Assembly: GCA_024137785.1 (NCBI GenBank)
Contig: JAHRHZ010000002.1
Span: 5,614,661-5,678,660, forward strand
Origin: Ginglymostoma cirratum
Lineage: Eukaryota
Direction: 5' to 3'
DNA length: 64,000 nucleotides
The notes beneath the pieces are model-generated. The model worked only from the letters and a program-made list of their open reading frames with translations. It did no database searches and was not told where the DNA came from. The position numbers were made by a program, and so were the translations under genes. Shown piece by piece: positions 10,601 to 50,310 of this stretch. Within the stretch, counting starts at the first letter, position 1. Each line of letters opens with the position of its first letter.

Positions 10601-13600
10601 GGTAGAACTGAGAAAGGTACATTGACTATGATGGGGTTATACTACAGGCCTCCCAATGGCCGGCGGGAAACAGATACTTAAGTAGATCATGGAAAGATAT
10701 TTTAAAAAACGGCAGGTCTGAAAAGGTGGGTGATTTTTATCTTCCCCAATATTGACTGGGACTCCCTTACTTCCAGCATGGCTTTATGCAGCAGCAGTCT
10801 TGTCTCACAAATTCAGTTGGGTTTTTTGAGGAAGAAACAAAGATGATGGTTGAGGGAAAAGCACTGGTTATTGTCTGCATAGACTTCACGAAAGCATTTG
10901 ACAAGGTCACAAATGGGAGACTGGTCCAAAAGATTTTGACACTTGGGATCCATGTTGAGTTAGGGGTTGAATGAGACAAAATTTGATTGATTGATTTATT
11001 GCTGTCACATGTACTAAGATACAGTGAAAAATGTTGTTTTGCGGGAAGTATTGATGGAGTCAATGGATGGAAGGCCGCTTTGCATGATGGACTGGGCTGT
11101 GTTCATGACACTCTGTGATTTCTTGCGATCTTGGGCAGAGCTATTGCCATACCAAGCTGTGATGCATCCAGATTAAATGCTTTCTATGGTACATCCATAA
11201 AAATTAGTAAGATTCCTTGTGGACTTTCCAAATATCCTTAGCCTCCCCGAGGAAGCAGAGATGTTGTTGTGCTTTCATGACCGTCATATTGATATGGGTG
11301 GACCATAGGTTGATAGTGACCATCACTCCTAGAAACATGATGCTTTCGACCATCTCTACCTCAGCACCATTGATGTAGACAGGGGTGTGCCCTCCACTCT
11401 GCTTCCTGGAGTCAGTGATCAGCTCCTTCATTTTCCTGATGTTGACGAAGACATTATTGGCTTTACATCACGCCACTGAACACTCAATCTCCTTCCCGTA
11501 TTCAGTCTCAACATTGTTTGTGATCTGACCTACAACAGTGATGTTGTCAGCAAACCTGTAAATGGAGTTGCATCAGAATTTGTCCATACAGTCGTGAGTG
11601 TATAAGGAGTATCGTAGGGGCCTGAGTGCCTAGCCTTGCGGAGCACCCGTGTTGAGGATTATGGTGGAGGAAGTGTGGTCCCCTATTCTTATTGCTTGCA
11701 GTCCATGGATCAGGATGTTGAGGATCCAGTTACAGAGGGGTGGGCCAAGACTTAGGTCTCAGAGTTTAGAGATGCGTTTGTTAGGAATTGTGATGTTGAA
11801 GATGGAATTGTAGTCAATAAATAGGAGCCTGAAATAGGTATCCTTGTTATCCAATGTTCCAGGGATGAGTGTAGGGCCAAGGAGATGGCATTTGCTGTGG
11901 GCCTGTTGCGTAGACAGGTGAATTACTACTGAACAAGGCAGTTTGGGAGGCTGGAGATGATGTGAACCATGACTAACGTCTTGAAATACTTCATAATTAC
12001 AGAGGTCAGTGCCTCTGGGCAGTAGTCATTGAGGCATGTTGCGTGACTTTTCTTTGGCACCGGCACATTTGTTCCATACAGCCAGGAGGGTTTCTTGAAA
12101 TGATATGTAGATAGTCCAACTGGGGAAAGGCTGTGCTATATTTTTTATTGAGAAATGAGCCAGGATAAGTGATCACATTCTCTGTGGTGAAGCATTTTAG
12201 GAACAGTGATCATAATTCCGTAAGTTTTAAGATCATTTTAGATAAGGGTAAAACTGGTCCTCGGATGAAATATATTGAGGGAGGCTAATTACAACAAGTA
12301 TTAGGCAGGAACTAGAGAAATTAAATTGGGTGTGGCTGTTGAAGGGTAAATTCCCATCTGAAATGAGGGAGCCTTTTAAAGGCAAGTTGATCAGAGTTCA
12401 GGACGAGCTTGACATTGAAAGATAAAGATGGCAAGATTCAGGAGAGTCCCAAGGCATTTTACACATATATATGCAACAAGAGGGTAACTAGGGAAAGAGT
12501 AGGTTCACTGACAGACAAAGAGAGAATGTATGCATGAAGCCCAGGGTAAGTGGGTGAGGTCCTTACTGAGTACTGTTCATCAGTATTTGCCAAGGAGAAG
12601 GGCATGGATGATGTTTAAGTTTAGGGAGGGGTATATGATTGAGGAGGATTAGGTTGATATTCTGAGTCATATCGATGCCAAGAAGGATAAGGTGTTGGGT
12701 ATCTTGAAAAACATTAATTTAGATAGGTTCCCAGAGCCTGATGGGATCTACCCGGGGAATACTGAAGGAGGCAAGGGAGGAGATTGCTGGGGCCTTGACA
12801 GAGATCTTTGTATGCTCTTTAGCCACAGGCAAGGTCCCAGAAGACTGGAAGGGTCAGTGTTGTTCTTTTTTTTTTAAGAAGGACAAAGGGATTATCCAGG
12901 AAATTATAGGCTGGTGAGCTTTACATCAGTGATAGCGAAATCATTGGAGAAGATTCTAAGGGGCTAGAAAAGGGATGGACTTAGAAGGGATAGTCAGCAT
13001 GGCTTTGTGCGTGGGAGGTCTTGTCTCACAAATTCAATTGAAGTCTCAAGAAAGTGACAGAGATGATCGTTGAGGGTAGGCCAGTGGATATTGTTTGCAT
13101 GGACTTCACTAAAGTATGTGACAAGGTTGCATATGGTCCAGAATGATGGTCCAGAAGATTAAGTTGCTTGGGATCCATAGTGTGTTGGCAAGCAGGGTGC
13201 AAAATTGACTTCGCCATGGAAGACAGAGAGTTGTTATGGAGCCGTATTTTTCTGACTGTAGACCTGTGACCAGTGGTGCTCTGCAAGGATCGGTGCTGAG
13301 ACCTGTTTCTAATATTAGATGAAAGATAGGTGGTCTGATTAGTAAGTTTTCAGATGACTCGAAAATTGGTGGAGTTATGGATATTGAGGAAGGTTGTCAA
13401 GGGATACAGTTAGGATATAGATCATTTGGAAAGTTGGGCAGAGAAATGGCAGATGGAGTGTAATCCGGACAAGTATGAGGAGATGCATTTTAGGAGGTCA
13501 AGTGCAAGAGGAAAGTATACAGTAAAAGCTTAGGAGCATTGATATACAGAGGGATCTTGGGGTGCAAGTCCTTAGCTTCCTGAAGGTGGAACACAAGTGG

Positions 13601-16600
13601 ATAATTTGGTAAGGAAGGTGCACGGCATGCTTGCTTTCATCTGTCAGGACATTGAGTATAAAAGTTGGCAGTTCATGTTGCAGCTGTTTAAGCCTTTGGT
13701 CAGATGACATTTGGAGTAATGCATGCATTTCTGGTGACCACACCGTAGGAAGGATATGGAAGCTTTGGAGAGGGTACAAAAGAGGTTTACCAAGATGTTG
13801 CCTGGATTAGAGTGTATTAGCTATAAGAAGAAGTTAGACAAACATGGATTCCTTTTGCTAGAGCATCAGAGGCTTGGGGCAATCTGACAGAAGTGTATAA
13901 AATTATGAGAGGTGTGGATAGTTGCAATCTCTTTCCCATGGTGAAAATGTCAAATACTAGGGGACATAGAATTAAGGTGAGAGAGAATAAGTTTAAAGAA
14001 GGTGAACGAGGCTAGTGTTTTTATGCAAAGGATGGTGGGTGCCGGGGGTGGGGGAGGGGGGACGGGGTGCGGGAGGTGGGGTGGTGGTAGAAGCAGATAC
14101 AACAACAAAATTTAAGAGGCTTTTACACAGACAAAGGGAAGGAATAGAGGAATATGGACCATATGCACGCATATGGGTTTAGTTTAGAATGGCATCATAG
14201 AATCCCTACAGTGCATGTAGAGGCCATTCGGCCCACTGAGTCTACACCAACCCTCTGAAGAGCATCCTTTCCCAGCCCCACCCCATCCCACTAACCCTAC
14301 AACTCCCATGGCTAATCCAATTAGCGTGCACAACTGGGGACACTACAGGACAATTTAACATGACCAATCTGTCTAACCTGCACGTCTTTGGACTGTGGGA
14401 GGAAACCAGATCACCCAGCGGAAACCTCACAGGCATGTAAACTCGACACAGGCAGTCACCCAAGGCTGGAATCAAAACTGAGTCCCTGGTGCTGTGAAGC
14501 AGCAGAGCTAACCACTGATCTACAGTGTCACCCTATTGGCACCCTATTGGTTAGCACATTCAATTAATGGCCCTTATGGTCAGCACCAAAATGGTAGACC
14601 AAAGGGCTTGTTCCTGTGCTCTACTGTTTTTACAATCTGACTGTAATAGTGAATGGATACTTGCGTTAGAATATCAATCAAGGTTTGAGGTATGGTCGCG
14701 CGTGATAGAGAAGATGTGTTTAACCATGTGTCCATCATCTCTTTTGGGCTCTGGCTGTGGTTAGGTTTGAACTACCTGCAGTACACCTCGGGCTGTGAGC
14801 TGCTAGAGGACGGGACAGTCACTGGAAAACGGCATTACGCCTTCAACGGGCGAGAGCTGATCAGCTTCGACCTGGAGCACAGCACCTGGGTTGCCGTCTC
14901 CCCTTATGCGGAGTCTACCCAGAGAAAGTGGAACAGCAATGCAGGTGACAATGAGTACAAGCGATACTACACAAAGAAGATTTGCATCGAGTGGTTAAAC
15001 AAGTACCTTCGTGAAGGTGCTGCAGTACTGAATCGCAAAGGTAGGTCAGACCCGAACTGTGCTGTCACAAGGCAGCCATAAAATCCATGGAAATCGCTCT
15101 CCTGCATGCTCACGCCATGCAGAGACAAAACCTAGCTTGCTCAGGCACAGTGCAGACATCATTGCAGCTGGGTCAATACAAGATCCACACACACAGGGCA
15201 GAGAGTTCAGGGAACAGAGGCCGCCCCCCCCAGGTCAATATACAGGGCACAGAGCATGACACAACAGTGTACACAGTGCACAGCACAAAACAGTCTACAC
15301 AGAGCACAATAAATGTGTACACAGAGCATAGAGCGCAGTAAATGTGTGCACAGGGCATGGAGCACTGGACACAGCACAGTACACAGGGCACGGTGCACAG
15401 TACACAGCACAGTACAGAGGGCACGGTGCACAGTACACAGGGCATGGTGCACAGTACACAGCACAGTACAGAGGGCACGGTGCACAGTACACAGGGCATG
15501 GTGCACAATACACAGCACAGTACACAGGGTACTGTGCACAATACACAGGACAAAGTACACAGGGCATGGAGTACAATACACAGCACAGTACACATGGTAT
15601 GGAGCACTGCACACAGCACAGTACNNNNNNNNNNACACAGCACAGTACACATGGTATGGAGCACTGCACACAGCACAGTACGCATGTCACATAGCACAAT
15701 ACTGTACACAGGTCACAGAAAACAGGCAACAGTGTACAGTGCACAGCCCATAGCACAGCACACTGAGCTTGACTCCGGTTTCTCTCAAGGCTGGCTCTCT
15801 CAGGGAGGAGCAGGAAAATCCCAGAGCTGTTAGTAAGCTGGAAACAGGCAAACGCTGCCAAACTGCATCAAGGTGAAAGCAGTACTGAGGATGGCTAGAG
15901 GCTCTGGTGGTAAATTTACTGATTTGCCAAGAGTACGGGACTTGATTAAGCCTCTCACATAGACTGATCCCCAAGACTGTACTCTTCATTACACCAGAGT
16001 TGCAGGCAATATTAGAAACTAAAACCAGTCAGAGGGAGCCATTACAGTTAAAGTGAATGTCTCTTTCTCTCTCACTCTCTGTCTCCCCCTCTCTTTTTCA
16101 GCTGTCCCGGAGGCAAACGTCTATTACACGAATGGGCATAATGTCAACCTGCACTGCCTGGTCACCGGATTTTACCCACAATCAATCAATGTGACCTGGT
16201 TTGCAGACGGAAAGCCAGTCCCTGATACCCATAGCACAGGGATTCTACCCAACCACGATGGCACCTACCAAATAAGGGTAGTTTTCCAGATCGAACGTGA
16301 CGATGGCCGTAACTACGTGTGCCGTATTGAACACAGCAGCCTGCCTGCACCGAAGGAGATACTGTGGGGTAAGAGATGGGACTGACCCATGGGCTCCGAA
16401 TGGGAATACACTGGGGAACGGATGGGGATAACCCAGTATCAAAAACGAGAATGAAGTCAGGATCAGAAATCGGTGCAAGTGGGCGTAAAGCATGAGAGTA
16501 AGTTGGGATAAGTGATCGGAATGCAATTGGGTGAGGAATGGTGGGAGTCCGGGGAAAGGAATGGGAATGTAATAGAATAGGAATGTGGATCATCAAGAAT

Positions 16601-19600
16601 AAAGAATGGAGTGGTGTAGGGGGTAGTGTCCCTGTCTTTGAATCAGAAACCCCAGGTTTGATTCTCACTCTGGGAGATGGCAGTCCTGGAAGATGTTCAT
16701 TTTTAAACAATTATTTATTCATTTACAGGATGTGGGCATCACTGGCTAGTGCCACAGCATTTACTGCCCATTTCTGATTGTCCAAACCCATCTCTGATTA
16801 TCCAAATGGGTAGTTAAGAGTCATTGCTGTGGCACTGGAGTCACATGTAGGCCAGACTGGGATAGGATGACATTTTCTCTCCCTTAAGGAGCATTGTTGA
16901 ACCAGGTGGCTTTTTCCCTGACAACAGTTTCATGGTCACCATTAGACTCTTTATTCCAGATAGTTATTGAATTCAAAGTCCACCATCTGCCGTGGTGGAA
17001 TTAGAACCCCGGTTCCCTGGTCATTAGTTGAGTGTCCTGGATTAACAACCTAGCAATAATACCACTAAACCATTGCCTCCTCTCATGACTCGGTGTGCAG
17101 TCTTTGTGAGGAACATCTTGGTGCCAACAGCGTAGAGTTTGATCTTTGTCCCAGCTCAGCAATCTTCTTGGAGGGATATGGACTGGCCACAGGCAGGTGG
17201 GACTAGTTTAGTTTGGGATTATGTTCAGCACGGACTGGTAGGAGTGAAGGGTTTGTTTCTGTGCTGTGTGACACTATGACTCGAAGGAATGGGAATAGCT
17301 CAGGAGGAGAAGAATTAGAAATAGCCAGGGATTAGGAATGCCAGGAAGCAATGGGAATAAGAATGCAATAGGAGCAACCTGAATGGAAAGATTGGTTTCC
17401 ACGATGAGGAGATTAGGAGTGATTTTCCTGGGTCATATTCAGATTAAGCTGAAGGGATCCTTGCATGCGCTGGGAGAAGAGAAACATAGCTTTATTGTTC
17501 ACTTTTCCTGCAGTTTCCTGACTGCTAAGAGTCTGAATGTTCTCAGCAGTTAACGTCCTTGTCATTGTCTGAACTGCAAAAATATTTACCCTCTGAGGAC
17601 ACACCCCTGCCTCAGCTGCCCTTTGAACTCTCTGCAACTCTCCCACCCCTTTGCATTGGGACGCTGATCCTTCTGCATCACTGTCCCATTCAGTGTCATC
17701 TCCATCCCTTAGAATGGCCTTAGGCTCCCTCAGAACCTACTCCTGGTGTGTGCTGGGTGATTTTTGAGGACTCCCATAGCTCAAGGGCATTTGACCCATT
17801 ACTTCTCTCCTGGATAGCTGCAATGATGGCTAGAGCTGCAGAGGCCAGAGGAGAAGAAGGTTTAGCCATTCCACTGGGTTGGGACATTTCAGGCTGGGAT
17901 GAGGGCATCAGGGGCTGAGACTCAATGTGTTCCTTTATTCTTTCAGAGAAAGATGGCGGTGTGGTACCAGTGGTGATTGGCTGTAGCATTCTGCTTTTGC
18001 TGTTAATTTTCTGCATCGGAGCTGGCGTTTACTACTGGAAGCACAAGGATGAAGTGAACAAAAGAGTCACCATCTGCATGGGTCATGGTGAGAGTTATGA
18101 TTTATTGATCTCCATTCATCCGTCACAGTCATCGCACAACATTTTGCAGTTGGTTTAATGGGAACCAGTTTAAAGCAAAGCCCCGCGGTTTCAGGACACT
18201 CGTAAAGACCTTTCCAATGGGAATAATGTGGTTATGCAGAAATCAGAGCAGTGAGTTAATACACAGCAAGATCCAATTAACGGCGATTGACCAAACAATC
18301 AGCTGTCATACACACTGTTGAGGTATCAATACTACCCACAATGCATAGTGACATGTGCCCACTCTCCCCATTTGGAGTGTGCCTCAGGCTAATGACTCAT
18401 CCAAAAAATGGCCTCTTTAGAAAATGTACCTCTACCTTGCTGCAGCCGTTCAAATACTCTGCCACTGCCACAATTCGACACCTCTAGCAAAGAAGCGTTC
18501 CCTCAGCATGCACCCACTGACAGTGCGGCGCTCCCTCTGTACTGACCTGCCGATGGTGCAGCGCTTGCTCCGTACTGACCTGCCGACGGCGCGGCGCTCC
18601 CTCAGTACTGGATATCCTCACTCTCCAAATCCCTGTTTGTTTCAGTCATTTCCATTGCCTGTGTTAGCAACTCCAACAAAAGCAATCCCTAAACAATTTC
18701 ACCCAATCATTTGAAAAAAAAAAAGAATGCTGGAAATCACAGTGGGTCAGGCAGCAAGCTGATGTGTCGATTCTCGATGACTCTGATGAAGAGCTATTTA
18801 GCCTCGAAATGTTAGCTTTCTGTCTCTTCATGGATGCTGCCGGACCTGCTGTGATTCCCAGCATTTTTTGTTTTTAGTAAGTTTTCAGCATCTGCAGTAA
18901 TTTGCTTCTTCACCCAGCCATTACTCTGACTTACCACATGACAAATCCAATTGCTGACGAAGCTTGTCAATGATTTCACGATCTTCACGCCAATATCTTG
19001 ATGACTGAGGCTGTGCGTTTTTTATTTCTTTAGGGTCTATGGCAAGTAACTCTTCAACAAGCAGTGAGTATATTCGGAATGGATTGAATTCTAATGCAAT
19101 TATTTGTAAAGTCTGTTCTGGGGAATGATTGGCAGTGCCAGTCTGATTCATCACAGTACATCTCAAATCTAAGGGAGCATTGGGAAGTTTCTGGGGAGTG
19201 CTGGAAGAGAAGGGACTGAGAAGAGACAGACAGATAAGAGAATGTGGAGCTTTTGCCATGTCCTGTTTGCTGACTGAAGATGCACTGACAGTGAATACAG
19301 AATTCCACAATGAGTTTCCGTCTTCTCCCGCGTTGCTCAGGGAATGCACTGAGTTGGTTGGCTTTCTCCCAAAATCACTGCGATGGCAGGATGGCAGTCT
19401 GAACACCTTCCCTGTGATGGACAAGTATCTTGTCTTGGTTTCTAGATCAATGCTTTGGTGTGGCCTGAAGAGCTTCCCATGGTGGACAGATATCTGCACA
19501 CTACCTAGATCAATGGACTGGCATGGTCTACACAGCTCCCTATGCCAGACAGATATCTGGACTGGGTTTATAGATCAATGCACAAGTACGGTCTGCACAG

Positions 19601-21537: not shown

Positions 21538-22320
21538 AGAACATAAGAACTAGGAGCAGGAGTAGGCCATCTGGCCCCTCGAGCCTGCCCCGCCATTTAG
21601 TAAGATCATGGCTGATCTTTTTGAGACTCAGCTCCACTTACCCGCTCGCACACCATAACCCTTAATTCCTTTACTGTTCAAAAATTTATCTAGCCTTGCC
21701 TTAAAAACATTCAGTGAGGTAGCTTCAACCGCTTCACTGGGCAGGGATTCCACAGATCCACAACACTTTGGGTGAAGAAGTTCCTCCTGACCTCAGTCCA
21801 ACATCTGCTTCCCTTTATTTTGAGGTGATGCCCTCTAGTCCTAGTTTCACCTGCTAGCGGAAACAACCCCCCTGCCTCCACCCTTCTTAATCTTATATGT
21901 TTCTGTAAGATCTCCCCTCATTCTTCTGAATTCCAATGAGTATAATCCCAGTCTGCGCTGTCTCTCCTCATAATACAAGCCTCTCAACTCTGGAATCAAC
22001 CGAGTTAATCTCCTCTGCACCCCCTCCAGTGCTAGGATATCTCTTCTCAAGTAAGGAGACCAAAACTGCACACAGTACTCCAGGTGTGGCCTCACCAGGA
22101 CCCTATACAGCTGCAGCATCACCTCCCTGTTTTTAAACTCCATCCCTCTGGCAATGGCAGACAAAATTCCATTTGCCTTTTTAATTACCTGCTGCACTAT
22201 TTTTAGTGATTCATGCACAAGGACACCCAAGTCTCTCTGACAGCAGCGTGCTGCAATCTTTCACCATTTAAAACATAGTCCATTTTGCTGTTATTCCTAT
22301 CAAAATGGATGACCTCACAC
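21538..22320 (-). mobile_element. CR1 LINE 3' fragment
   Basis: ORF 21847-22230 LYRVLVRPHLEYCVQFWSPY...LYSLEFRRMRGDL. Confidence 0.9.
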
Positions 22321-34784: not shown

Positions 34785-36150
34785 CTTTAAACGTCAAGTT
34801 TTCCTGCTCCTATGATGCTGCTTGACCCACGCTGGTTACTTTCGGAATGAATTCTTTCAGGTGGACAGTGCCAGACTCGGTGATGGGGACAGACAGGAAA
34901 GAGCACTCCAGTAAAACCACTGAGGCTTTGATGGGCGATGTCGTTGCCGTTCCTTGGGCAGGTAGCAATCCTTTTTCGGTATCCTGTCGGCAAGCTATCA
35001 CAGGAAGCTACTGTCGTTAACTCCGTTCTCCCTTCTCCGGCCAAATGTTGATGTTGCATACATCTCTCCGCGGACTGATGTCACCCACCAATGGGGAAGT
35101 CACACGGAACTGATGTTTTGATGGGCTTTAGGTCAGGATGAGTAGCTTCCCCTCCCTGTTTCCTGTGCTGGTGAAGTCTCTAATGGGAGACCTGGTCACA
35201 CTTGGAGGGAGTGAGTGCCTTGAGGCTGGTTACTTCAGACACACTGACGCCCCGGAAGAGTTTCCCTAGGGCTGCTGCTGACGACCAGGCAGTCGGCAGC
35301 AGGTATTCAGGTGCACGGGTAGGACTCCAGGTGTCGATCCTGGTGTAGTTGCAGATGTAGTTTCCAGTGTGTCTCCTGGCGTAGTTCCCTGCGTAATCCC
35401 TGGTGCTGCTGTTCCAATTGTAGATTTTACTGTAGTACCTGGATTTGATTTGCCGTCTGATTTCTAGTGTTGGTTTCCAGTGTAGCTCCTGGTATCTCTC
35501 CTAGTATAGTTCCCTGTGGGTAAGTCCTGGTGTACTTCGCTCTGGGAAATTCCAGATATTCCTGTACCTGGTGTAGCTGCTAGTGCAGCTCCAAGTGTCT
35601 CTCCTGGTGGCAGCTCCCAGTGTCGCTCCTGTACTGCTGGTCACAGTTTGGAGAATGGAGAGTTCGAAGAGATGCGCAATGATTCTGCATTTGACTGCGT
35701 TGTCTCTCCTCACTGCAGCTGGAGCCCATGCTGGTAAGGACGGACATTCCTGGTTGGGGTGGTGGGGAATGAATGAGCTGGTGCTGGTAGCGGTCACTCA
35801 CCCGCGGACCGAGTGAAATATCTTTGCCGCTCTACGAAGTCTGCGTGACGAGTTGAGGGATTGAAATCCTGTCTCACAATCCTCTCACAAGAGTGCGGGA
35901 TAAACACAAGCAAACTCTCAAATCGTAAGTTGCGAGCAAACTGCTCATTTCGTGCCCAACGGGGTCAACTTCGCAAATAAAACTCCAGCGAAGATGCCTC
36001 CGCAGAGTCCTTCACTGAGAGACGATCAGCACAGACAGAGAGAGTGAGAGGCAGAGATAACACAGTGTGCAGCTGGATGAACACAGCAGGCCGGGGGGCA
36101 TCAGAGGAACGGGGAAGTTGACGTTTCGGGTCGGGACCCTTCTTCAGAAG
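34785..36150 (-). mobile_element. Decayed 5' part of a Penelope-like element
   Basis: Hammerhead-bearing terminus at 36055-36150. Degenerate ORF-start similarity, an internal low-complexity repeat and VPITESGTVHLKEFIPK resembling the PLE LPL.E.E.SVL..GL.FIP motif. Inverted terminal fragment at 34785-34830. Confidence 0.45.
36120..36147 (-). ncRNA. Minimal hammerhead ribozyme motif
   Basis: Reverse complement CTGAAGAAGGGTCCCGACCCGAAACGTC, with a 5-bp stem II GGGTC/GACCC. Confidence 0.65.
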
Positions 36151-38301: not shown

Positions 38302-41300
38302 GTGACCACACTGGGGACTGATGTAATGACTAATGGGGAAGTGACAGTGATATCCTTAAGGCTAGCTCAGCAGAGTTGGATATATTTCAGGACATGGGTC
38401 TAACCACATATTCTGTTCTGCCTGAAGTTCCACAGTGACCTGGTTCTTGTTTGGCTGGGTGCGCATTGGACTCAGTAAATAACCTGGGAATTCTGGCCTG
38501 GCCCTGAGTGACAAACACGGTGGGGAAAAAGAGGGAGAGCCTTCGTGTATAATCAGGTCTTACTCATATATAATGGGGCTGATTAGCTCAGTTGGCTAGA
38601 TAGCTGGGTTTGCAATACCAGAGAAACACCAACAGTGTGTGTTCAGCTCTTGCGCCCGCTGAGGTCACTGCTGCCTAACTGCACCCCTTCTCTCTCGATT
38701 TATTTCTGAGCTCCTTTTCCCCTCCCCCATTTCTGAAGAAGGGTCCTGACCTCAGACGTCAGCTTTCCAGATGTTGCCTGGCCTGCTGTGTTCCTCCAGC
38801 TCCACACTGTTCTATCTCTAACTTCACCCCATACGTGAGGCATGGTGACTGTCAGGTTAAAACACTACCAATTTCTCTCTAATGAGAGAGTAGTCCTCTG
38901 TGACTTTACTGTAGTTTATTAGTCATACAGATGATGAGTCTCTTTCTACCTTATTGCTGACTGTGGGTGTTTGGTGAATGGGATTTGGCTTCCTCTTTCC
39001 AATATTACAACCATGAAGGCACTACAAATTCTTTGGATAATACTTAGGATAATCCTGAAGTGTTGAGAAAGAGGCATAATCGAGTTTGGAAATGCTGACA
39101 TTTCATTCATAAGCATCACAGGTTTAAATTCTCATGATTCATACATTCGGATTACATGCCTCAGGTCAAATGGTCAGGCCTAGCTACTGGATCAAAGGCC
39201 TCAAACTCAGGCCTCTCTGATGCACCATTCAGCTGCACTTAAAGTTTCACCCAATCTCACTGCTTCAATGTGGTTCTAACCCATGGCCCATTCTTCAGTC
39301 TCTCCTTTGGAGGGGGACAGATTCTAGACAGCCCCGTGCTTGATTGCTTCAGGATGATGATGGTGTTTTTATATGTATATGTGTGTGTGTGCATGTGTGT
39401 GTGTGTGTGCCTGTTTATGTGTGTGTCTGTGTCTGTGTGTGTATATCTGGGGTGGGGGTGTTGCAGTGTCAATTCCGATTTCTGTATTCCTCCCCCTTCC
39501 CCCGAGGCATTTCTATAGGCATCCAGGGGCATCAAGTTCAAATTCAACCTCCAACCAGAGAGGTCCCTCTCTCAACATCCTGCCTGTAGGGGACATTCAG
39601 AACCCAGACCCAAACTGCACCCCTAGCCACCCCTCATTCTCCTGTTTCAACTGGAGGGACAATCATGGGCATTTGGTGAGACAATGCCTGGAAAACAGTC
39701 AGCTCTTTTAATCTCCCTGTCTAAGGCATCATTGCAAGGAAGATCCCAGAGAATTGGCCTATGATAAGAAATTGAGTGAATTGCGATCATATTCTCTGCA
39801 GTTCCAAAGAATTAGAGGTGACATGAGTGTCCTATCAGGATAATACTGACAGCCATGCCTGGGGAAACTAAAGCACACAGACTAGGATAAAGGGGTTGAT
39901 TGTTTATGACTGAAATGAGGAGAAATGTTTTTCTTCATAGAGGGTGGTGAATTTTTGGAATTCTCTGGCCCAGACAGTTGCAGGTGCTCCATTCTCTTTG
40001 AGGTCTGAGACAAACAGAGTTTTGAGCTTTCAGGAAATCGAAGGTGAAGGGGACAGGCTCAAAGGGCAGGAAGGCTGTCTCCAGCTCCTATTACCTGAGC
40101 GTTCATTTCTTGCCCATTTTCCTGAAGGTGAGGGTGTCAAAGGCAGATCAGGGCCTGAGGCCAGCAGGTAGGGGCCGTGGGGGTGCTCTGTCCCTCATTC
40201 ACGGTCCTTGTGTGTGACTTCCCCTCAGGCTCCCACACCTTGCAGTATCTCTTCATCTACGCCCCCCAGCATCCGGACCTGCCAGAGCTCTCTATGAGTG
40301 GGATGTTGGATGATCTTCAGATCGAGTACTATGACAGCTCCCTCAAACAGATCCAGCCCAGACAGCAATGGATGGCCAGCAAGATCACGGAAGATTACTG
40401 GCAGGAACAGAACATGGCTGTAGACGCACTTCAAAACCACATCTTCAGGAAAATTGCTCCATTGGTCACAATACTTGGTATGTCACATTGGTCCTAGTGC
40501 GCCGTTGTATGTCAAAATGGAATTCGGTTGACACTAATGTATCAAGGGTATAAACTGACATGGGGCAGTGACCGACGGTTCTTCACCTTTTCAGTTTCCT
40601 AATTGTGAAAGGAAATATGGTAACAACAACTTGTATTTATGTAACAGCCCTAATTTGATTTGATTGGATTTATTATGGTCACATGTACCTAGGTACTGTG
40701 AAAAGTTTTGTTTTGCGTGCAGTGCAGGCAGATCTTAACATAAAAGAGAGCAAGGAATGCAATGTTACGCCTGCAGACAATGTGCGCAAAGAGCAAGGTC
40801 AAAGTTAAATTCAGAAGTCTAATAATGGTCTTCAATATACTAAATGTCCTAGAGGCCATTCAGCCCATCAAGTCTGCACTGATCCTTTGAGGAGCATCTC
40901 ACCCAGACCCAGACCCCTACCGTGTTCCCATAACCACACGTTTCTAATACCTAATCCACTTAGCCTGCATATCCCTGGAAACTACAGGGCATTTTGCACA
41001 GCCAATCCATCTAACCAGCATATTTTTAGGCTGTGGGAGGAAATCCGCACCTACATGGGGAGCATGTGCAGACTTCACCACAGAGAATCACCCCAACCTG
41101 GAATTAGACTTGGGTCTCTGGTGCCATGAGGCACCAGTGCTAACCACTGAGCCACCATGCTTCACAGGAGGGGCAGCAAACAAAACTTGACAATGAGTTG
41201 TCATACTTTTGTCAAAGCATCACTTTGAGGAAGAATCTTAAAGGAGAAAAATGAGGTAGAGAGGCAGAGAAGGAGATGGAAGGAATTTCAGAACTTGGGC

Positions 41301-44300
41301 TCATGGGCCATTGAAGGTGCTGTCACCAGTAATGGAGCGATTGTGATCAGACATGCTCAAAAGCCCAGAAGGGTCTGAATCTAGTACCAGAGCATTGTAG
41401 GTAAAAATGAGAGGTCGGCTATTTAGACAGATATGAGGAAAAAGTGTTCTTCTCCGAGGGTTGTGAGTCTTTGGTATTCTCTTCCACAAAATAGTTCAGT
41501 TAGAAATGTGGGTGTTGAGCAATATAATTGAGCAATACAGGGAAAGAAAATGTGCGAAAAAGGTTGACAGCCCTCCAGGTTGAAAAGTTGCCAGGCCCAG
41601 ATGGGATTCTTCAAAATAGCTGGGAGAGGTAAGAGAGCAAATTGTGGAGCCATCGTCAGAAATTTTCCAGGCCTCTCTGAACACAAAATTCGACCTGGGA
41701 ACTGAAGGATTGCAAATGTGACACCATTGTTTCAGAAAGGGTCAAAGAATAACCAAGGAAACTATAGACCTGTCAACTTGACATCAATAGTGGGAAAAAT
41801 AACAGAAGCCATTGTATGGGGTAAGATAATTATACACTTAGAAAAAATTAACTCAATACTAGGCTAACTTAATACTACCTTGTCAAGGGCAATTCATGTC
41901 TGGCAAATGAACTGAGTTCTTTGGTGAGGTGACACAGGCAGTGGATGAGGCTAATGCTGTGGATGTTGTACATTTTGACTTTCAGAAAGCATTTGATATG
42001 ATGCCACATGGCAGGTTGGGTAGCAAATTAGAAACGTTTGGGATTGATGGATTCTTGGCAGAATGGATTAGAAGTTGGCTAAAAGGCAGAAAACAGAGGA
42101 TTGGTGTAGATAGGCATTTTTCAGTTTGGAGATGAGTTGAAAATGGTGTTCCCCAGAGACTGATGTTAGGAAACTTGCATTTTTCGATTTATGTAATTGG
42201 TTCAAAGATGGGTGTTGAAGACAAAGTCACTCAGTTTGATGAAACTAAGCTAGGGAGAATAGTGAATTGTGAGGATGATGTCGTGTGACTTTGTAGAGAA
42301 TTTGACAAGTTGGCCAAATGGGCAAACACCTGGCAGAAGAATTTCAATGCAGACAATTTTGAAGTAATGCATTTTGGTAGAAGAAACATGGAGACACAAT
42401 ACAGACTAAATAGTACAACTTTGTGGGGAGTACAGGAGTAAAGGGACCTCAGGGTTCACATGCATAATGCCCTGAAGATGACCAGGCAAGTTGTAACAGA
42501 TGTTAAGAAGGCTTATAGGATCCTTGTGTTTATTATTGGAGACATAGAGTGCAAAAGCAAAGAAGTGATGCTCCATCTCTACAAATCATTGGTCAGACTA
42601 CATTTTGAGTATTGGGTTCAGTTCTGGACATCTTATTTAATGAAGTATGTTAAAGCTCTCAAGAGAGTATGCAAAGGAGATTTATTAGAATGATAACAGG
42701 ATTGAGGGATTTTAGATACAAAGAAATATCAGAGAGATTGGGCTTATTTTCCTTGGAGCAGAGAAGATAAAGATGCAATTTTATTGAGGTATTCAAAATT
42801 ATGACCAATTTAAGAAGGATATTCTGTTTTCAATAGTCACACCAATAGTGGTATGTCAGCAACTTCAAGGTGGTCAGGAGGGGAGCTAGGAGTAAGATGT
42901 GGAGAAATTTCTTTACACAGAGAGTTCTTAGGATTTGGAATGCACTACCTGGGAGAGTGGTGGAAGTGGATCCCTTCTGAGGTTTCAAAAGAGAGCTGGA
43001 TATATGTTTGAAAGTGATGAATTTATGGAATCATAGAATCCCTACAGCGTGGAAGAAGGCTATTCAGCCCTTTGAGTCCACACAAATCCTCCGAGGAGCA
43101 TTACAACTGGACTCAACACCCTAACCCAGCCCCGTAACCCTGCATTTCCCATGGCCAATTCACCTAACCTGTACATCTTTGGATTGTGGGAAGAAACCTG
43201 AGCACTCAGTGGAGACCCACGCAGACATAGGGAGAATGTGCAAACTGCACATGGACAGTTGCCCAAGGGTGGAATCAAACCTGAACCCACGGTGCTGTGA
43301 GACAGTAGTGCTAACTACAATTTAGAGGGCTAGGACTGAAGAATAGACTAGCTGGGTAACTTTTTCAATGGGTTGAACAGCCTCCTTTTGTGCACTGTAA
43401 AAATTTATGACAGTAAAAGTCAATGGATGAAAAATCCTTCAATTTTTTTAAGGCAGAGATTGATAAATTCTTGGGTACCAAGGGAATCGGGGTGTACGGG
43501 AACGTAGAGTTGAGGTTAAAATCAGATTGGCCATGATCTTATTGAATGGCAGAGTGGGCTTGAAAGGGCCCAAGTGGCCTACTGGTGTTCCTTCCTCATA
43601 TGTTTGTAATAAATGAGGTTTGATTTCTCTGACATGAGACAGAAACAGACAAACGCCACTTGAGAACAAAAGAGAAATTTTAACAAGTAATTGCCCGACC
43701 AGGAGCCAGAGTGTATCAGCATGGAATAAGGTCGTGATTAGAGACAGGATTTCCTGCCCATCAAGACATACTTGCCTCTTCAAGAGTTCCCTTAAAAGTC
43801 ACAACCTTGATCAATCTGATCTAATATCTCCCACTGTGTTTCAGTGCTAACCTTTGGGTTATAATTTCCCTGCGCAGCTCCTATGTGGTATATGAAAGAT
43901 GTTTAGCACTTCAATGGGAATAGGATAGATCGAGTAGGAGCTTGGTCTGCTGGATAAAATGAACTCCGAGACGCCGTTAGGTGCAGTTTGGCGAGACCAT
44001 AGAGAAACAGTACATCCGCAGCCTCTCGTCAATTCTGTATCGCTCATTGCCGCATACCGTACACCATACATTTACACATGATGGGTTAGGGGCTCCACCT
44101 AATACAGACATGAATGGACAGATCTATCATTAATGCCTAGTTGATCTTCTTGATCATTCGCAGGTATCCGATACATCCAGGTCCTTTGGAAATGCACAGT
44201 GGAAAATAGCCAAAACACCACAGCGTTTGTAAAGCTAAACGTCCATGGGCTTGGAGTTGTTGATTGTAACTTGTTCACAGTGCGTTGCAGGGGGCTTGGT

Positions 44301-47300
44301 GTGTTTTCTGTTCTGATTGGAATGGTTGAAGATATCCTCAAGAATGATCCCACTTTTATCCAGTTGCTGAATCCCAGATGTGTTGAAAACCTCCAGACAG
44401 TACTTCGAGCTGGTAAAACAGCCCTGGAAAGAAAAGGTAAGTGGAACAGTACAGTCAGACGCTGAGACTGACCTGGACCTTGACGCTGAGTGTGATCGGG
44501 ATCAGGATTCCGACTGTAATGCAAAACCGATTTCCGAGTGTGATCCAATTTCTGGGTGTGATACAAATTTGATTTCCCAGTGTGATCTGGATTCTGATTG
44601 TGATCCATATCCGATTTCTGAGTGTGGTCCGGATTCTGATTTTGAACCAATCCAGTTTCTTGTGTTATCCCCGGATCTGAAGTCTGAGTGTGTTCCTTGT
44701 CCAGATTCTGGCTGCGAACTAAATCCCAGTTCCGAGTGTGATCTGGATCTGAATTCTGAATGTGATCCGTTGGGTGAACATTGCATTAACTTTCAAAAAT
44801 AGAGTGCCTTTCACTTTTGCTTCTGGTTCTTCCTCAGTTACTCCCCAGGTACTGGTTTTCGAAAGGAGCTCCACTGCGGAGATGTCCACACCTCTCCTGT
44901 GCCTCATCACTGCCTTTTATCCCCGCACCATCAATGCCACGTGGCTACGTAAGGGAGAGCCTGTCTCAGAGGACCTTACAGTGATGGTTCTGCCAAACCA
45001 TGATGCCACGTACAGAATGGAGATCCTCATTGACATCAAGAACAATGACCCAAGCAACTACTACTGCCAGGTTCAGCACTGTAGCTTGCCTGAGGCACTG
45101 AGAGTAACATCGGGTAAGGTATCACACAACAATATTGCTCCAAAGATGGCCACTTGAGTCATGTTGCCTGTGAAAGACTAATCCAACTCGACCAGCTCCT
45201 TCCATGCTTATTCTTGCTTGCGCATTTTTCCCTTTAACCATATCTAATTCCTTTTTGAAAGTCATCTGCTTCTTACACAATTTTATTCCTGAACACAGCA
45301 ACACGTTGTGAAAATAAACAAAAATCTTCTCATCTCTCCTGTGCCCTCTTAGCAGATCATTTTTAAGCTGTGTCCTCTGGCCAGCAATTCTCCTGCTAAT
45401 GCAGGGGGAAGAATTTTTTTTTTAAATTCCTGATAAGTTGTCAGTTGATGAAATAGAGGGAGAGAGCTGGAAAAAGCTTGGAAAAATGTATAGATGAGCT
45501 AAGGGCTAACTTTCACGATTGACCAATGGCAGACTGCGGAGTCATTGAAATTAAACAACAAACACAGTAGCTTATTGGCCAGAGATAGTTAAGAGCTGCC
45601 GATGCTGGAGTCAGAGATAACTCAGTGTGGAACTGGAGGAACACAGCAGGCCAGGCAGCATCAGAGGAGCAGGAAAGCTGACATTTTGGCTTAGGGCACT
45701 TCTTCAGAAATGGGGAGACGGGAGGAAGCTCAGACATAGAGATTGGAGGGTGGGGCTGGGGAAGGTAGATGGAATGGTGATAAGCAAGTGCAGGTAGGCA
45801 GTGGTGGGGATTAGTCAGTGAGGCGGGGAGAGCGGATAGATGAGCAAGAAGATGCACAGGTTGTGTCAGTTCGAGTAGATGGGGGTGAGAGGGAGGGCTG
45901 GTCATGGGATGAGGCTGGGGATGGGGAGATTTTGAAACTGGTAAAATCCACATTTAGGCCATTGGGCTGTAGGATCCCGAGGTGGAATACGAGGTGGTGC
46001 TCCTCCAGTTCCTAGGTGGCGTCATTGTGACACATGAGGAGGCCCAGGATGGATGTGTCACCCAGGGAGTGGGAGGGGGAGTTGAAGTGGTTCGTGACCA
46101 GAATGTATTGCTCTACAAAGCAGTCTCTGAGCCTCCACTTGGTCTCACCGATGTAGAGGAGGCCACAGCGGGAGCAAGGGATGCAGTAGGCCAAGTTGAC
46201 GATGTGCATGTGAACCCCTGTTGTTTGTGGAAGGTTTGTTTGATGCCTTGAATGGAGGTGAGGGGGGAGGTTTAGGGGCTAGCACTGCTGCCTCACAGTG
46301 TCAGGGACCTGGGTTCAATTCCAGGGTGTGTGTGTGGAGTTTGAACATTCTCCCTGTGTCTGCATGGGTTTCCTCTGCATGCTACAGTTTCCTCCCACAG
46401 TCCAAAGATGTGCAGGTCAGGTGGATTGGCCATGTGAAATTGCCCTATAGTCAAGGGATGTGCAGGCTAAATGGGTTAGCCATGGTAAATGCAGGGTTAC
46501 AGGGATAAGGTAGGGAGGTGGGTCTGGGTGTGATGCTCTTTGGAAGGTCCTTGTGTACTTGATGGGCAGAATGGCCTGTTTCAGTGCTGTAGGGATTCTA
46601 TAATTCAATTCTAGTGTTCAAATAGCCGTTTATAGGTCTGCTGTGTTCAGGCCTTCATTTCTTCATTTCAGAAGGTATAGGGGGTTGGTTTAATTGAGGT
46701 GATGTAGTTCAGATTGTACATTTTGGTTTTCAAAACACATGGCCAATCCACCTGACCTGCACATCTTTGGACTGTGGGAGGAAACTGTAGCATGCAGAGG
46801 AAACCCATGCAGACACAGGGAGAATGTTCAAACTCCACATAGTCACCCAAGGGTGGAATTGAACCAGGACCCTTGTTCTGTGAGGCAGCAGTGCTAGCCC
46901 CTACACCTCCCCACACACCTCTATTCAGCCCACATCCCGTGCCTTGTTCCCCTTCCTCTGAGTTCCAAGGAACCAAGAGATTGCAACAGCAGCTGTTGGT
47001 TGAGGAACTGGATGGAGTTGCACAAAGAGGAAGGATGTGGAGGCTTTGGGGAGGGTACAGAAGACGTTTACCAGGATGCTGCCTGGGTTAGAGCATACGA
47101 GCTATAAGGAGAGGTTTTCAAAAGGAATTGGACAAAAGATCTGTTTCTGTGCTGTATTACTCTATAAATGGGTTTCTTCAACTTAAAAGTGCCACAGGTT
47201 GAAAGAACTAGAGACAGAGAATAAAAAAACGTGATAACCAGCGAGGTTGGCATAGGTTAGAGTATTGCGGACAATTCAAGGTGCTTCAAGGAGAATATAA

Positions 47301-48527
47301 GACTTTAGAAAGGATACAAAGGAGATTTATTAGGGAAAAGGGACAATGGATTATGAAGAGAAACCGGGAATGTCAGGATGGTACACCTTGAAACAGTGAA
47401 GGTCATATAGGTCACAGTGTAGGTGATGACTTATAATGAAAGCAAAATATTGCAGATGCTGGAGATCTGAACTAAAAACTGACAATGCTCGAGAAACTCA
47501 GCAGGTCTGGCAGCTGCTGCAGAGAGAGACACAAAGTTAGCATCTTGAGTCTGGTATGGCTCTTGTTCAAACCTGAAAGCTGTTGTAAAAAAGTTTACAT
47601 GTTGATGTTATTGACGGAAGCAGAGGAAGACCAAGGGGGTCAGAGGCCTAATGCAAAAGACAGAGGGTTGTTAAGAGTGTGTAAAAGAAGACATGTAAAA
47701 TGGGGGTAAATTGAGGTGTGAAGGAAAGAGAACGGGTGGTCTCTACTAACTGCAAAGTAAACAAGACACAAACACAACTTGGCTGTTGGGGCAGAGTTGG
47801 GAGAATGCAAGAAAAATGGAAGATACCCATGCTGCGGTCAGTTACTGAAGTTGTTGAATTCATTATTGAGATCAGCAACCTTGAATGCAGACATTCTGAC
47901 CCCCAACCCTTAATTCTGATGACCACTGGTTGACAAACCTAGCAGAGGGATTTTAATGGCACGGGAGAGTAAAACAGCTGGGTAAAGCCCTCGCCTCTCA
48001 AAAGCTGCTTCCCAGCCTGCTCTCAGCCTCCCCCACAACCCAAGGACCCACCTAGCTTTTAGCCAAAGTTTGCCAATACTCAAAGGAATGCCATTTCACA
48101 CAGGAATTGTGTTCCTTAAAGGTGAATCCCACTGGGAACTGATGGGGAACCCAAGACGAATCACTCTCAAACTCACTGGGATGATTCTCATGTCAGGCAG
48201 ACTTATGGAAATCGACAAACCCATTGGAAGTTGTCCATTTCAACGGCCCCAAATCAATGCAAAAGGAAGTGCAACCAGGGTGAATAACTGGGAGGCGTTG
48301 TGAGCAGTCACTCAGTATCTAATGCTGGCAAAATCAAACGCCCTGTGGTTTGGGCTGTGGGGAAAGATGTGTGTGTGTATGTGGTTGTATTTCACCGTCA
48401 CTCTCCTTTAATGGTCTGTGTGTGTTGTATCCGGCATGCAGGAGTTGGTCGTGTAAGTCACAGTATTTGCCCTGGCCCAATGCTGTGCCTATTCACTGTG
48501 CTGGCAATAGTGACAGGCGTGGCGTAG
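38190..48527 (+). CDS. Divergent nonclassical MHC class I gene B (CD1-like hydrophobic groove, possibly shark UFA lineage; putative GPI anchor); join(38190..38301,40229..40477,44164..44436,44838..45113,48442..48527), ~331 aa
   Basis: The alpha1, alpha2 and alpha3 exons have phase-1 GT-AG borders and are open. The leader and last coding exon are inferred. The joined CDS is 996 nt and in frame. Confidence 0.8.
40229..40477 (+). CDS. Gene B alpha1 exon
   Basis: cccctcag|GC; GSHTLQYLF...LPELSMSGMLDDLQIEYYDS...PRQQWM...DYWQEQ...; CTT G|gtatgt. 83 aa, no N86 sequon. Confidence 0.93.
41570..43030 (+). mobile_element. CR1 LINE ORF2 fragment (intron 2 of gene B)
   Basis: NYRPVNLTSIVGK, DFQKAFD, LYKSLVRLHFEY.VQFW. 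Confidence 0.85.
44164..44436 (+). CDS. Gene B alpha2 exon
   Basis: ttcgcag|GT; IRYIQVLWKCTV...RCVENLQTVLRAGKTALERK G|gtaagt. C101/C164 spacing and the ...L.RK end are typical of alpha2. Confidence 0.88.
44480..44770 (+). repeat. Degenerate (TCCGAGTGTGATCCGGAT)-type repeat filling the short alpha2-alpha3 intron of gene B
   Basis: Recurrent GAGTGTGATC with 6n periodicity, which gives spurious Cys/Asp-rich ORFs. Confidence 0.75.
44838..45113 (+). CDS. Gene B alpha3 IgC1 exon
   Basis: tcctcag|TT; LLCLITAFYPRTINATW...LPNHDATYRM...YYCQVQHCSL; TCG G|gtaagg. Confidence 0.95.
45590..46270 (-). mobile_element. Penelope-like 3' fragment (GIY-YIG)
   Basis: ORF 46012-46209 CSRCGLLYIGETKWRL, plus a 3' terminus like that at 3680-4100. 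Confidence 0.85.
48442..48527 (+). CDS. Gene B C-terminal hydrophobic exon (GVGRVSHSICPGPMLCLFTVLAIVTGVA*); exon continues to the donor at 48569
   Basis: catgcag|GA in phase 1; TAG at 48525-48527; strong donor CAG|gtgagt after 48569. Next acceptor ttcccag| at 48677 and AATAAA at 49199-49204 suggest a 3'UTR exon. Confidence 0.65.
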
Positions 48528-49529
48528 GGATCAATTTCAACGAAGGCTGTGGGAAAGGCGCGAGCACAGGTGAGTAAAGACCTGCATCCAGGTCTCACAT
48601 CCCGTTCATTATCTAAAAGCAAGTGATAATAAGTGGCAATATTCTATACGTAATCACCTGCTCCTTCTCTTTCCCAGATGAGCATTAATTCCTGCAAGTC
48701 TCTCACCAGCTGCCCAGTACTGAATCGATGACTGAGATGCTGCCAATTGTTTCATGAAAGCAAGCCTGTTTGCAACCGTTTCACTGTCACCTCTAACATG
48801 CTAATTGGCTGGACTTTGTTCTTTTGCATTGTATTATCGCTTTCTAATAGATTTTGAAATGTTTGTTAAGTTTCAGTCTGCGCCTCAGTTCAGTATGAAG
48901 CACCATGAACTTTGAAACCTGACTTCTGTACAGCTTCCTTTTCTTTTCATTCCTGATTTTTTCAATATAATGTCACCACCCCTTGTGGATAGGCCTGTGA
49001 TATCCAGGAATTGATGACAAAATCATTGCTGTGTGCAACTCAAATGAAAAGAACCGGACAGGAATGTTTAAACAAAAGTGATTTTTTTTTGTCATTTGTC
49101 CAACTCCAATTTCCTAACTAAAATTATAGACTCAACAGACACTGGATTGTGAGTCTGGACAATGATCAGACTCAAGAAGTAATCTGCTGCCATACCAAAA
49201 TAAAATGAATATTATAAATTTAATCTGTGACATTTATTGCTGAGATTTTAGTTTGCCATGTTTCTTTCAGAGGGCTATAGTAACACCTTTCAGCTGTGGT
49301 ATATTCCAGTACACTTTACAACCTCTTTTGCAGTGTGGTCACTGTTCTAACAAAGGGACTGAGACAGCCAAATAGTGCACACCAAGTTCCCATAAACAGG
49401 AATTTGCTAATAACCGAAAAATGTTTCTTTTTAGGCGTTGATTATGTAAAATGAACTCCCCTGTTGATCGTCCAAAAGTGCCATGAATATGTTGCACAGG
49501 TGGGACACACAATCCATCTGTATATGCAA

Positions 49530-50310
49530 CACTCCTTCAGTACAAACCCCCTAGCACTGCTGCAGTCCCTGAGTACTGACCATCAAACTATGCAGCACTC
49601 CCTCAGTACTGACCCTCTGACAATGCGGCACTCCCTCAGTAATGACCCTCTGATAGCGCAGCACTCCCTCAGTAATGACCCTCTGATAGCGCAGCACTCC
49701 CTCAGTACTGACCCTGTGACAGTGCTGCACTCCCTCAGTACTGACCCTCTGACAGTGCGGCACTCCCTCAGTACTGACCCTCTGACAGTGCGGCGCTCCC
49801 TCAGTACTGACCCTGTGACAGTGCTGCACTCCCTCAGTACTGACCCTCTGACAGTGCGGCACTCCCTCAGTACTGACCCTCTGACAGTGCTGCACTCCCT
49901 CAGTACTGACCCTCTGACAGTGCGGCACTCCCTCAGTACTGACCCTCTGACAGTGTGACACTTCCTCAGTACTGACCCTCTGACAGTGCGGCACTCCCTC
50001 AGTAATGACCCTCTGATAGCGCAGCACTTCCTCAGTACTGACCCTCTGACAGTGCGGCACTCCCTCAGTAATGACCCTCTGACAGTGCTGCACTCCCTCA
50101 GTAATGACCCTGTGACAGTGCTGCACTCCCTCAGTACTGACCCTCTGACAGTGTAGTGCTCCCTCAGTACTGACCCTCTGACAATGCGGCACTCCCTCAG
50201 TACTGACCCTCTGACAGTGCTGCACTCCCTCAGTACTGACCCTCTGACAGTGCTGCACGCCCTCAGTACTGACCCTCTGACAGTGCTGCACTCCCTCAGT
50301 ACTGACCATC
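49530..50310 (+). repeat. 33-bp satellite array (CACTCCCTCAGTACTGACCCTCTGACAGTGCGG)n
   Basis: About 23 tandem units, opposite orientation to 36160-37940. Degenerate copies at ~5790-6340 and 18500-18610. Confidence 0.95.

Follow-up and report, generated by a model that had tools for sequence, protein, structure and literature searches.

A 64-kb stretch of the genome of the nurse shark, Ginglymostoma cirratum (hereafter the window, whose numbering is used throughout), carries on its plus strand a gene, gene B, for a class I heavy chain of the major histocompatibility complex (MHC) that ends immediately after a short hydrophobic stretch. The C-terminus is encoded by exon 5, which is a conserved three-part signal and not a broken transmembrane (TM) exon. 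Judged by consensus rules, it is probably a signal for the attachment of glycosylphosphatidylinositol (GPI), which would make the product of gene B a GPI-anchored class I molecule. The gene itself is the nurse-shark member of the CD1-like MHC class Ib lineages of elasmobranchs, UFA or UGA.

Exon 5 (48442-48569) follows an acceptor, gcatgcag, 3.3 kb past the exon for the alpha3 domain. The alpha3 exon ends in ...aca tcg g|gtaagg at 45113 and, joined to it in phase 1, exon 5 reads G-VGRVSHSICPGPMLCLFTVLAIVTGVA-TAG. The coding part (48442-48524), delimited from the sequence, hydropathy, RNA contigs and 24 relatives, has small residues at the start of the exon (G-V-G, the candidate omega region), a polar spacer of about 8-10 residues that ends in P-G-P (RVSHSICPGP), and about 15 hydrophobic residues, MLCLFTVLAIVTGVA. 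The TAG stop (48525-48527) comes directly after these, and no stop-transfer residues are present. The mean Kyte-Doolittle value over the final 15 residues is 2.5. A type I TM protein would have a hydrophobic span of some 20 residues or more, then basic stop-transfer residues and a cytoplasmic tail, and gene B lacks this combination. It has instead the features expected of a GPI protein, namely a hydrophobic C-terminal stretch without a cytoplasmic domain and an N-terminal signal peptide for the endoplasmic reticulum (ER), the latter encoded by a predicted leader exon at 35655-35733. Small residues, a polar spacer and a hydrophobic stretch that closes the chain, in combination with a signal peptide, make up the textbook GPI attachment signal. 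Neither blastn nor tblastx of exon 5 found a further copy of this exon within the window.

The proposed sequence of events would begin with entry of the gene B chain into the ER by means of its signal peptide. GPI transamidase would then remove the last ~20-28 residues and attach the GPI lipid, leaving the mature heavy chain, together with beta2-microglobulin, in the outer leaflet of the membrane. The expected consequences would be the loss of the endosomal sorting that depends on a tail motif in mammalian CD1b, CD1c and CD1d, residence in rafts and possibly shedding.

The reality of the stop codon was evaluated with RNA aligned to 44100-49400, comprising contigs from three studies (X1, X5, and X6) and raw poly(A) RNA reads (X21). 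Among the joints listed, three of the GT..AG type connect exons of gene B. The alpha2-alpha3 joint (44436>44838) was present in X1, X5 and four X21 reads, and the joint between alpha3 and exon 5 (45113>48442) in X1 and in a 765-nucleotide (nt) X5 contig that spans alpha3, exon 5, and exon 6. The joint between exons 5 and 6 (48569>48678) was found in X1, X5, X6, and one X21 read. Across exon 5 the contigs of the three studies had no mismatches, no gaps and no inserted or deleted letters. The depth of X1 was ~180-330 in exons vs. ~17-25 in the unique parts of introns, showing that X1 behaves as RNA. X5 and X6 depart from the window at 44313, 44325 and/or 49073. These single-nucleotide polymorphisms (SNPs) mark X5 and X6 as other haplotypes, which rules out that the TAG is an assembly error or belongs to one animal only. 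The TAG is genuine and present in mRNA, and exon 5 is used after alpha3.

The remainder of exon 5 (48528-48569), which reads AWRRDQFQRRLWERREH in the +1 frame and ends at the donor cag|gtgagt at 48569, belongs to the 3' untranslated region (3'UTR). Exon 6 (48678-49204) is wholly 3'UTR and includes AATAAA at 49199-49204; RNA contigs extend to 49182-49192, and depth drops beyond ~49232. A stop within 50-55 nt of the last exon-exon junction usually escapes nonsense-mediated decay (NMD). In gene B the TAG precedes the last junction by 42 nt, consistent with NMD escape, and the depth of the RNA is likewise consistent with a stable transcript. The original prediction, made from the sequence alone, had proposed the phase-1 splice to exon 5, the reading of that exon without stop-transfer residues or cytoplasmic tail, the NMD-safe position of the stop, and the further exon with its AATAAA, and each of these was borne out. 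It had also offered, as an alternative, a 1-nt indel near 48515-48525, and had named RNA across exon 5 and the same exon in other sharks and rays as the evidence to consult. The RNA joins alpha3, exon 5 and exon 6 with no indel, and 24 relatives have the same stop; together these refute the indel.

Relatives of gene B were sought exon by exon, with two database proteins, P0008 and P0158, used as full-length stand-ins. A HMMER search with the alpha3 exon as query against 1.84 billion representatives returned two close single-domain matches, P0004 (78% identical) and P0008 (67% identical), and a follow-up search with P0008 returned 25 relatives, exclusively from sharks and rays. Twenty-four full-length relatives represent 16 species besides the nurse shark, so that the stop is shared by at least 17 sharks and rays. 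The relatives are 309-321 amino acids (aa) long, apart from two models of 331 and 336 aa with odd predicted N-termini. At the protein level, the level at which the orthologs were compared, all 24 terminate 25-30 residues past alpha3, at the same position as gene B.

The family also has the layout of this end in common: first small residues, in many cases G-V-G, then a polar spacer, as a rule closed by P-G-P, S-G-P or A-G-P, an uncharged run, and the end of the chain. Examples from sharks and rays are the C-termini of Chiloscyllium punctatum (...SGVGRVSQRIWPGPALCLFTMLAMAVGAV), Cetorhinus (...SGIKGVSETIHSGPVLGLLLAIMGGVI), Pristiophorus (...SGGRGSSDTISPGPVLGLLAVLAIMAGVV), Heptranchias (...GSGVGGSKEAIRSAPVLGLVAVLATIAGLI), Pristis (...GGVGEPRGAGPMLGLMAVLAMVIGAV), Leucoraja (...GGVGGPRDAFGASYMLVLVATLVMIIGTW), Mobula (...GGVGEPHGAGPMLGLMTVFAIIFGVM), and Narcine isoform X1 (...AGVSRPYEVFRADPIMGLMVVLAVVIGAA). 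The longest uncharged C-terminal run in the 24 relatives is 13-21 residues (median 19), with 0-4 residues beyond it. In contrast, control class I chains (gene A of the window, described below, and chains that the same search returned from other class I lineages) have runs of 22-28 residues followed by clusters of K/R and 20-79 more residues. The end is unchanged between the predicted isoforms X1 and X2 of Carcharodon and of Heterodontus. Two of the models, one from Scyliorhinus and P0004 from Chiloscyllium, are mis-models.

In a maximum-likelihood tree the 24 sequences formed one clade (Shimodaira-Hasegawa-like approximate likelihood ratio test, SH-aLRT, 100). Within it the rays were monophyletic, the nurse shark stood beside Chiloscyllium, and the order was roughly that of the species tree. 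A single clade that roughly follows the species tree indicates that the tail-less end predates the split of sharks and rays. The tail-less end is ancestral to elasmobranchs and is a trait of the whole family rather than of the nurse shark. Conservation of the stop at its exact position and of the physical character of the end, despite drift of the sequence itself, argues for selection on the C-terminal end.

The GPI reading was evaluated with a crude consensus rule made for this analysis (omega residue from SGANDC, omega+2 residue from GAST, a spacer of 4-12 residues and a hydrophobic end). Gene B satisfied the rule with G-V-G, as did 20 of the 24 relatives and one of 145 other proteins of the same search; in the four relatives that failed, the boundary of the hydrophobic stretch takes in the spacer. 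Several points weigh against GPI attachment. The rule is uncalibrated and does not replace a validated predictor. The omega site of gene B is ambiguous, with G-V-G or, further in, S-H-S as candidates. The uncharged run amounts to 21 residues when counted from ...SICPGP and could just span a membrane without a tail, and in some relatives an R, K or E stands two to four positions from the C-terminus. A broader claim, that GPI anchoring is the ancestral and obligatory mode of attachment of this CD1-like, lipid-presenting lineage in all elasmobranchs, would go further than the reading for gene B itself, and we consider the case for and against it to be evenly balanced.

The principal competing explanation is that the hydrophobic stretch is not cleaved and serves as a short type I membrane span, after which no cytoplasmic residues follow. 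The length of the run in gene B and across the family, together with the ambiguity of the omega site, is compatible with such an anchor, and human ULBP2 has been reported in both GPI and TM forms (PMC3686720). However, the run opens with P-G-P or S-G-P, which leaves ~15-16 helix-forming residues, and most members of the family have no basic anchor residue after it, whereas the control class I chains combine their longer runs with a basic stop-transfer cluster. A signal peptide and a terminal hydrophobic end are, moreover, what is generally expected of a GPI protein. A tail-less TM anchor is thus unlikely, although it is the alternative that best survives.

A product that is mainly secreted or shed would have its hydrophobic end removed or only poorly anchoring, and its functional form would be soluble, as are zinc-alpha2-glycoprotein (ZAG) and soluble class I isoforms. 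Shedding of GPI proteins is possible in general, and Narcine, alone among the relatives, has extra predicted isoforms (P0170 and P0175) in which a hydrophilic end takes the place of the hydrophobic one. The hydrophobic end is nonetheless kept in every species, which argues for a membrane step, and among the nurse-shark RNA joints listed, none skips exon 5. A mainly soluble molecule is therefore quite improbable.

The least tenable explanation is that a recent 1-nt frameshift or assembly error has truncated a normal exon for a TM segment and tail, so that gene B would be a pseudogene or misassembled and the true protein would end in ...AWRRDQFQRRLWERREHR; the +1 frame is open and basic, but the intact RNA contigs, the stop position common to the 24 relatives, the length of the Chiloscyllium exon (P0004) and the expression and crystallization of the protein (8GM8, see below) leave this explanation with next to no probability. 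Pseudogene status, a private mutation and an assembly error were each ruled out by the relatives and the RNA of three studies. P0004 represents the Chiloscyllium exon in frame 0, and its length across the supposed indel site equals that of the nurse-shark frame 0, which means that the two species do not differ by an indel there.

The open +1 frame beyond the stop, which the original prediction had remarked on, is present at 48528-48681 on the plus strand; it reads AWRRDQFQRRLWERREHR and ends in TGA at 48679-48681, 1 nt into the last exon. Open frames with at least seven K/R occur at 0.2% of the 54-nt positions in the window. If GPI anchoring is the ancestral mode of attachment, the basic frame might be what survives of an ancient frameshift by which a TM exon became a GPI signal. 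No readable trace would, however, be expected of a frameshift dating back to the origin of the family, which points to chance or to a constraint on the 3'UTR.

The placement of gene B in the CD1-like lineages follows from its ectodomain. P0158 (UniProt A0ABF7PPZ1) is a protein of 265 aa from Ginglymostoma cirratum, running from GSHTLQY to ...ALRVT, and is identical to chain A of PDB entry 8GM8 (265/265 residues). The ectodomain of gene B differs from P0158 in two residues, one of which corresponds to the G>A SNP at 44325 found in X5. This match means that the structure of the gene B ectodomain has already been solved. The original prediction had also proposed a class I molecule with a lipid groove, in agreement with the match to 8GM8 and with the reviews on UFA and UGA cited below. 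PDB matches were to class I, CD1, MR1, and ZAG, and another structure, 9CH4, is a distant relative.

Two allelic sites of gene B, both in alpha2, change a residue: N/D at 44268, deduced by comparison with 8GM8, and V/I at 44325, which X5 carries. The X5 contigs are interrupted precisely at 44267-44268, as a heterozygous site would cause them to be. The changes at 44313 and 49073 are silent and in the 3'UTR, respectively.

UFA and UGA have been named in reviews as CD1-like, MHC-linked class Ib lineages of elasmobranchs (PMC10751288, PMC12562908). Gene B resembles them in that its ectodomain is that of 8GM8 chain A except for the two allelic residues, and its position beside a second class I gene may correspond to the one described for UFA within the MHC-Ib cluster (PMC10751288). 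Copy number in the UFA/UGA family is single or low in sharks, with several copies in rays. The binding of lipids by UFA and UGA, observed by crystallography and mass spectrometry, is cited as unpublished (PMC10751288) or as a personal communication (PMC12562908), and it is from this literature that a lipid-binding groove may be attributed to gene B. Nothing in gene B itself sets it apart from UFA or UGA, and the accessible literature is silent on their membrane anchor. The literature searched holds no account of the C-terminus of UFA or UGA, of 8GM8 or of GPI-linked class I molecules in cartilaginous fish. The present finding is thus of a GPI-type class I molecule in a known gene, for whose C-terminus no description was found in that literature.

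The gene model upstream of exon 5 comprises four exons on the plus strand. The coding part of exon 1 (35655-35733) was predicted from the sequence and from a PAM30 tblastn search with the leaders of orthologs, to which it is similar. It begins with ATG at 35655, encodes the signal peptide MESSKRCAMILHLTALSLLTAAGAHA plus 1 nt (phase 1) and ends at the donor g|gtaagg. The codon at the predicted junction of exons 1 and 2, g|gc, encodes Gly, which is residue 1 of the 8GM8 construct. Other candidates for the leader, from a scan for hydrophobic ATG/donor combinations and a scan for an LSLC motif, were microsatellite artifacts only. With the predicted leader the precursor is 320 aa long, in line with the relatives, and replaces the 331-aa model of the original prediction.

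Exons 2-4 encode the alpha1-alpha2-alpha3 architecture of a class I heavy chain. Exon 2 (40229-40477) encodes alpha1, which has a weak Pfam MHC_I match (E 7.9e-06, below the curated cutoff) and is identical to P0158/8GM8. Exon 3 (44164-44436), delimited by the RNA joint 44436>44838, encodes a divergent alpha2 domain that matches P0158 except at the two allelic residues; it had no Pfam match, but the spacing of C11..C74 is kept. Exon 4 (44838-45113) encodes alpha3, an Ig domain of the C1-set (Pfam E 3.6e-12), and has RNA joints on both sides.

Repeats occur in introns 2 and 4 of gene B. Reverse-transcriptase-like open reading frame (ORF) fragments, the remnant of a long interspersed nuclear element (LINE), lie at 41929-42770 on the plus strand in intron 2, and similar fragments occur around 8843-9103, 10786-10974, and 21847-22230. 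Intron 4 is packed with very high-copy repeats at 45516-47639, where there are many loose ends, and the word depth of RNA contigs reaches ~4e5 at 45516-45692. A search of intron 4 against Rfam gave sub-threshold matches only (HYMAI-like at 46952-47190 and SNORD104-like at 47420-47484).

The second class I gene, gene A, lies at 9293-18158 on the plus strand, 22 kb upstream of gene B. Its exons, all on the same strand, encode alpha1 (9293-9568), alpha2 (~14760-15045), alpha3 (~16100-16375), and a TM segment (~17950-18050). Gene A has strong Pfam MHC_I matches, and its ordinary TM segment of 28 residues is followed by KHKDE. The gene A TM exon is unrelated in sequence to exon 5 of gene B. Comparison of the gene A alpha2 exon with PDB led us to reject 9CH4 as the identity of gene A. 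The intron between alpha2 and alpha3 of gene A contains a 21/33/54-nt tandem array (unit GCACAGTACACAGGGCA...) at 15173-15861, interrupted by an N gap at 15625-15634. A 33-nt minisatellite with the core CTCCCTCAGTACTGACC is found downstream of both genes, with 2.8 copies at 18519-18610 (gene A) and 23.6 copies at 49530-50307 (gene B). The shared 3' flank may reflect an old tandem duplication or a common repeat element.

Gene A, an ordinary TM-anchored shark class I gene, can be compared with gene B. Both are class I genes with a leader, alpha1, alpha2, and alpha3, a membrane exon and one or more exons downstream. The uncharged segment of gene A is followed by basic residues and further sequence, whereas gene B stops after its hydrophobic stretch. 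The type of anchor bears on the making of tetramers and soluble forms, on detection of the molecule on cells and on its shedding.

Class I-type molecules with a GPI anchor are found in mammals. Mouse Qa-2 and RAE-1 are GPI-linked, and RAE-1 and the ULBPs are missing the alpha3 domain. Human ULBP1-3 and mouse H60c are GPI-linked as well (PMC3686720). These molecules share with gene B a class I-type ectodomain and a short hydrophobic C-terminus without a tail. However, they are ligands of natural killer (NK) cell receptors or peptide binders, they are of mammalian origin and they are not CD1-like, whereas the shark lineage is CD1-like, has kept alpha3 and has an end that is older than the split of sharks and rays. 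The anchor of the shark lineage and that of the mammalian GPI-linked class I molecules have no common origin and arose independently.

Mammalian CD1b, CD1c, and CD1d share with gene B a class I fold with an alpha3 domain and, according to a published report (PMC12562908), a hydrophobic groove of the lipid-binding type. They are type I TM proteins, and a tyrosine motif in the tail directs them to endosomes, which is needed for part of their antigen presentation (PMC1887692, PMC2194227, PMC2193251); presentation by CD1d to Valpha14 natural killer T (NKT) cells is lost when the tail is deleted (PMC1887692). In contrast, gene B and all of its relatives are entirely tail-less. An end that has been without a tail since before the shark/ray split would indicate that lipid presentation in the oldest jawed vertebrates followed a different trafficking logic, which, if the molecules are GPI-linked, would be that of a lipid anchor. 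If GPI attachment is ancestral and obligatory, lipid sampling by the oldest known CD1-type molecules would proceed independently of the tail-motif sorting to endosomes through AP-2/AP-3, and these molecules would reside in rafts and might be shed or passed between cells.

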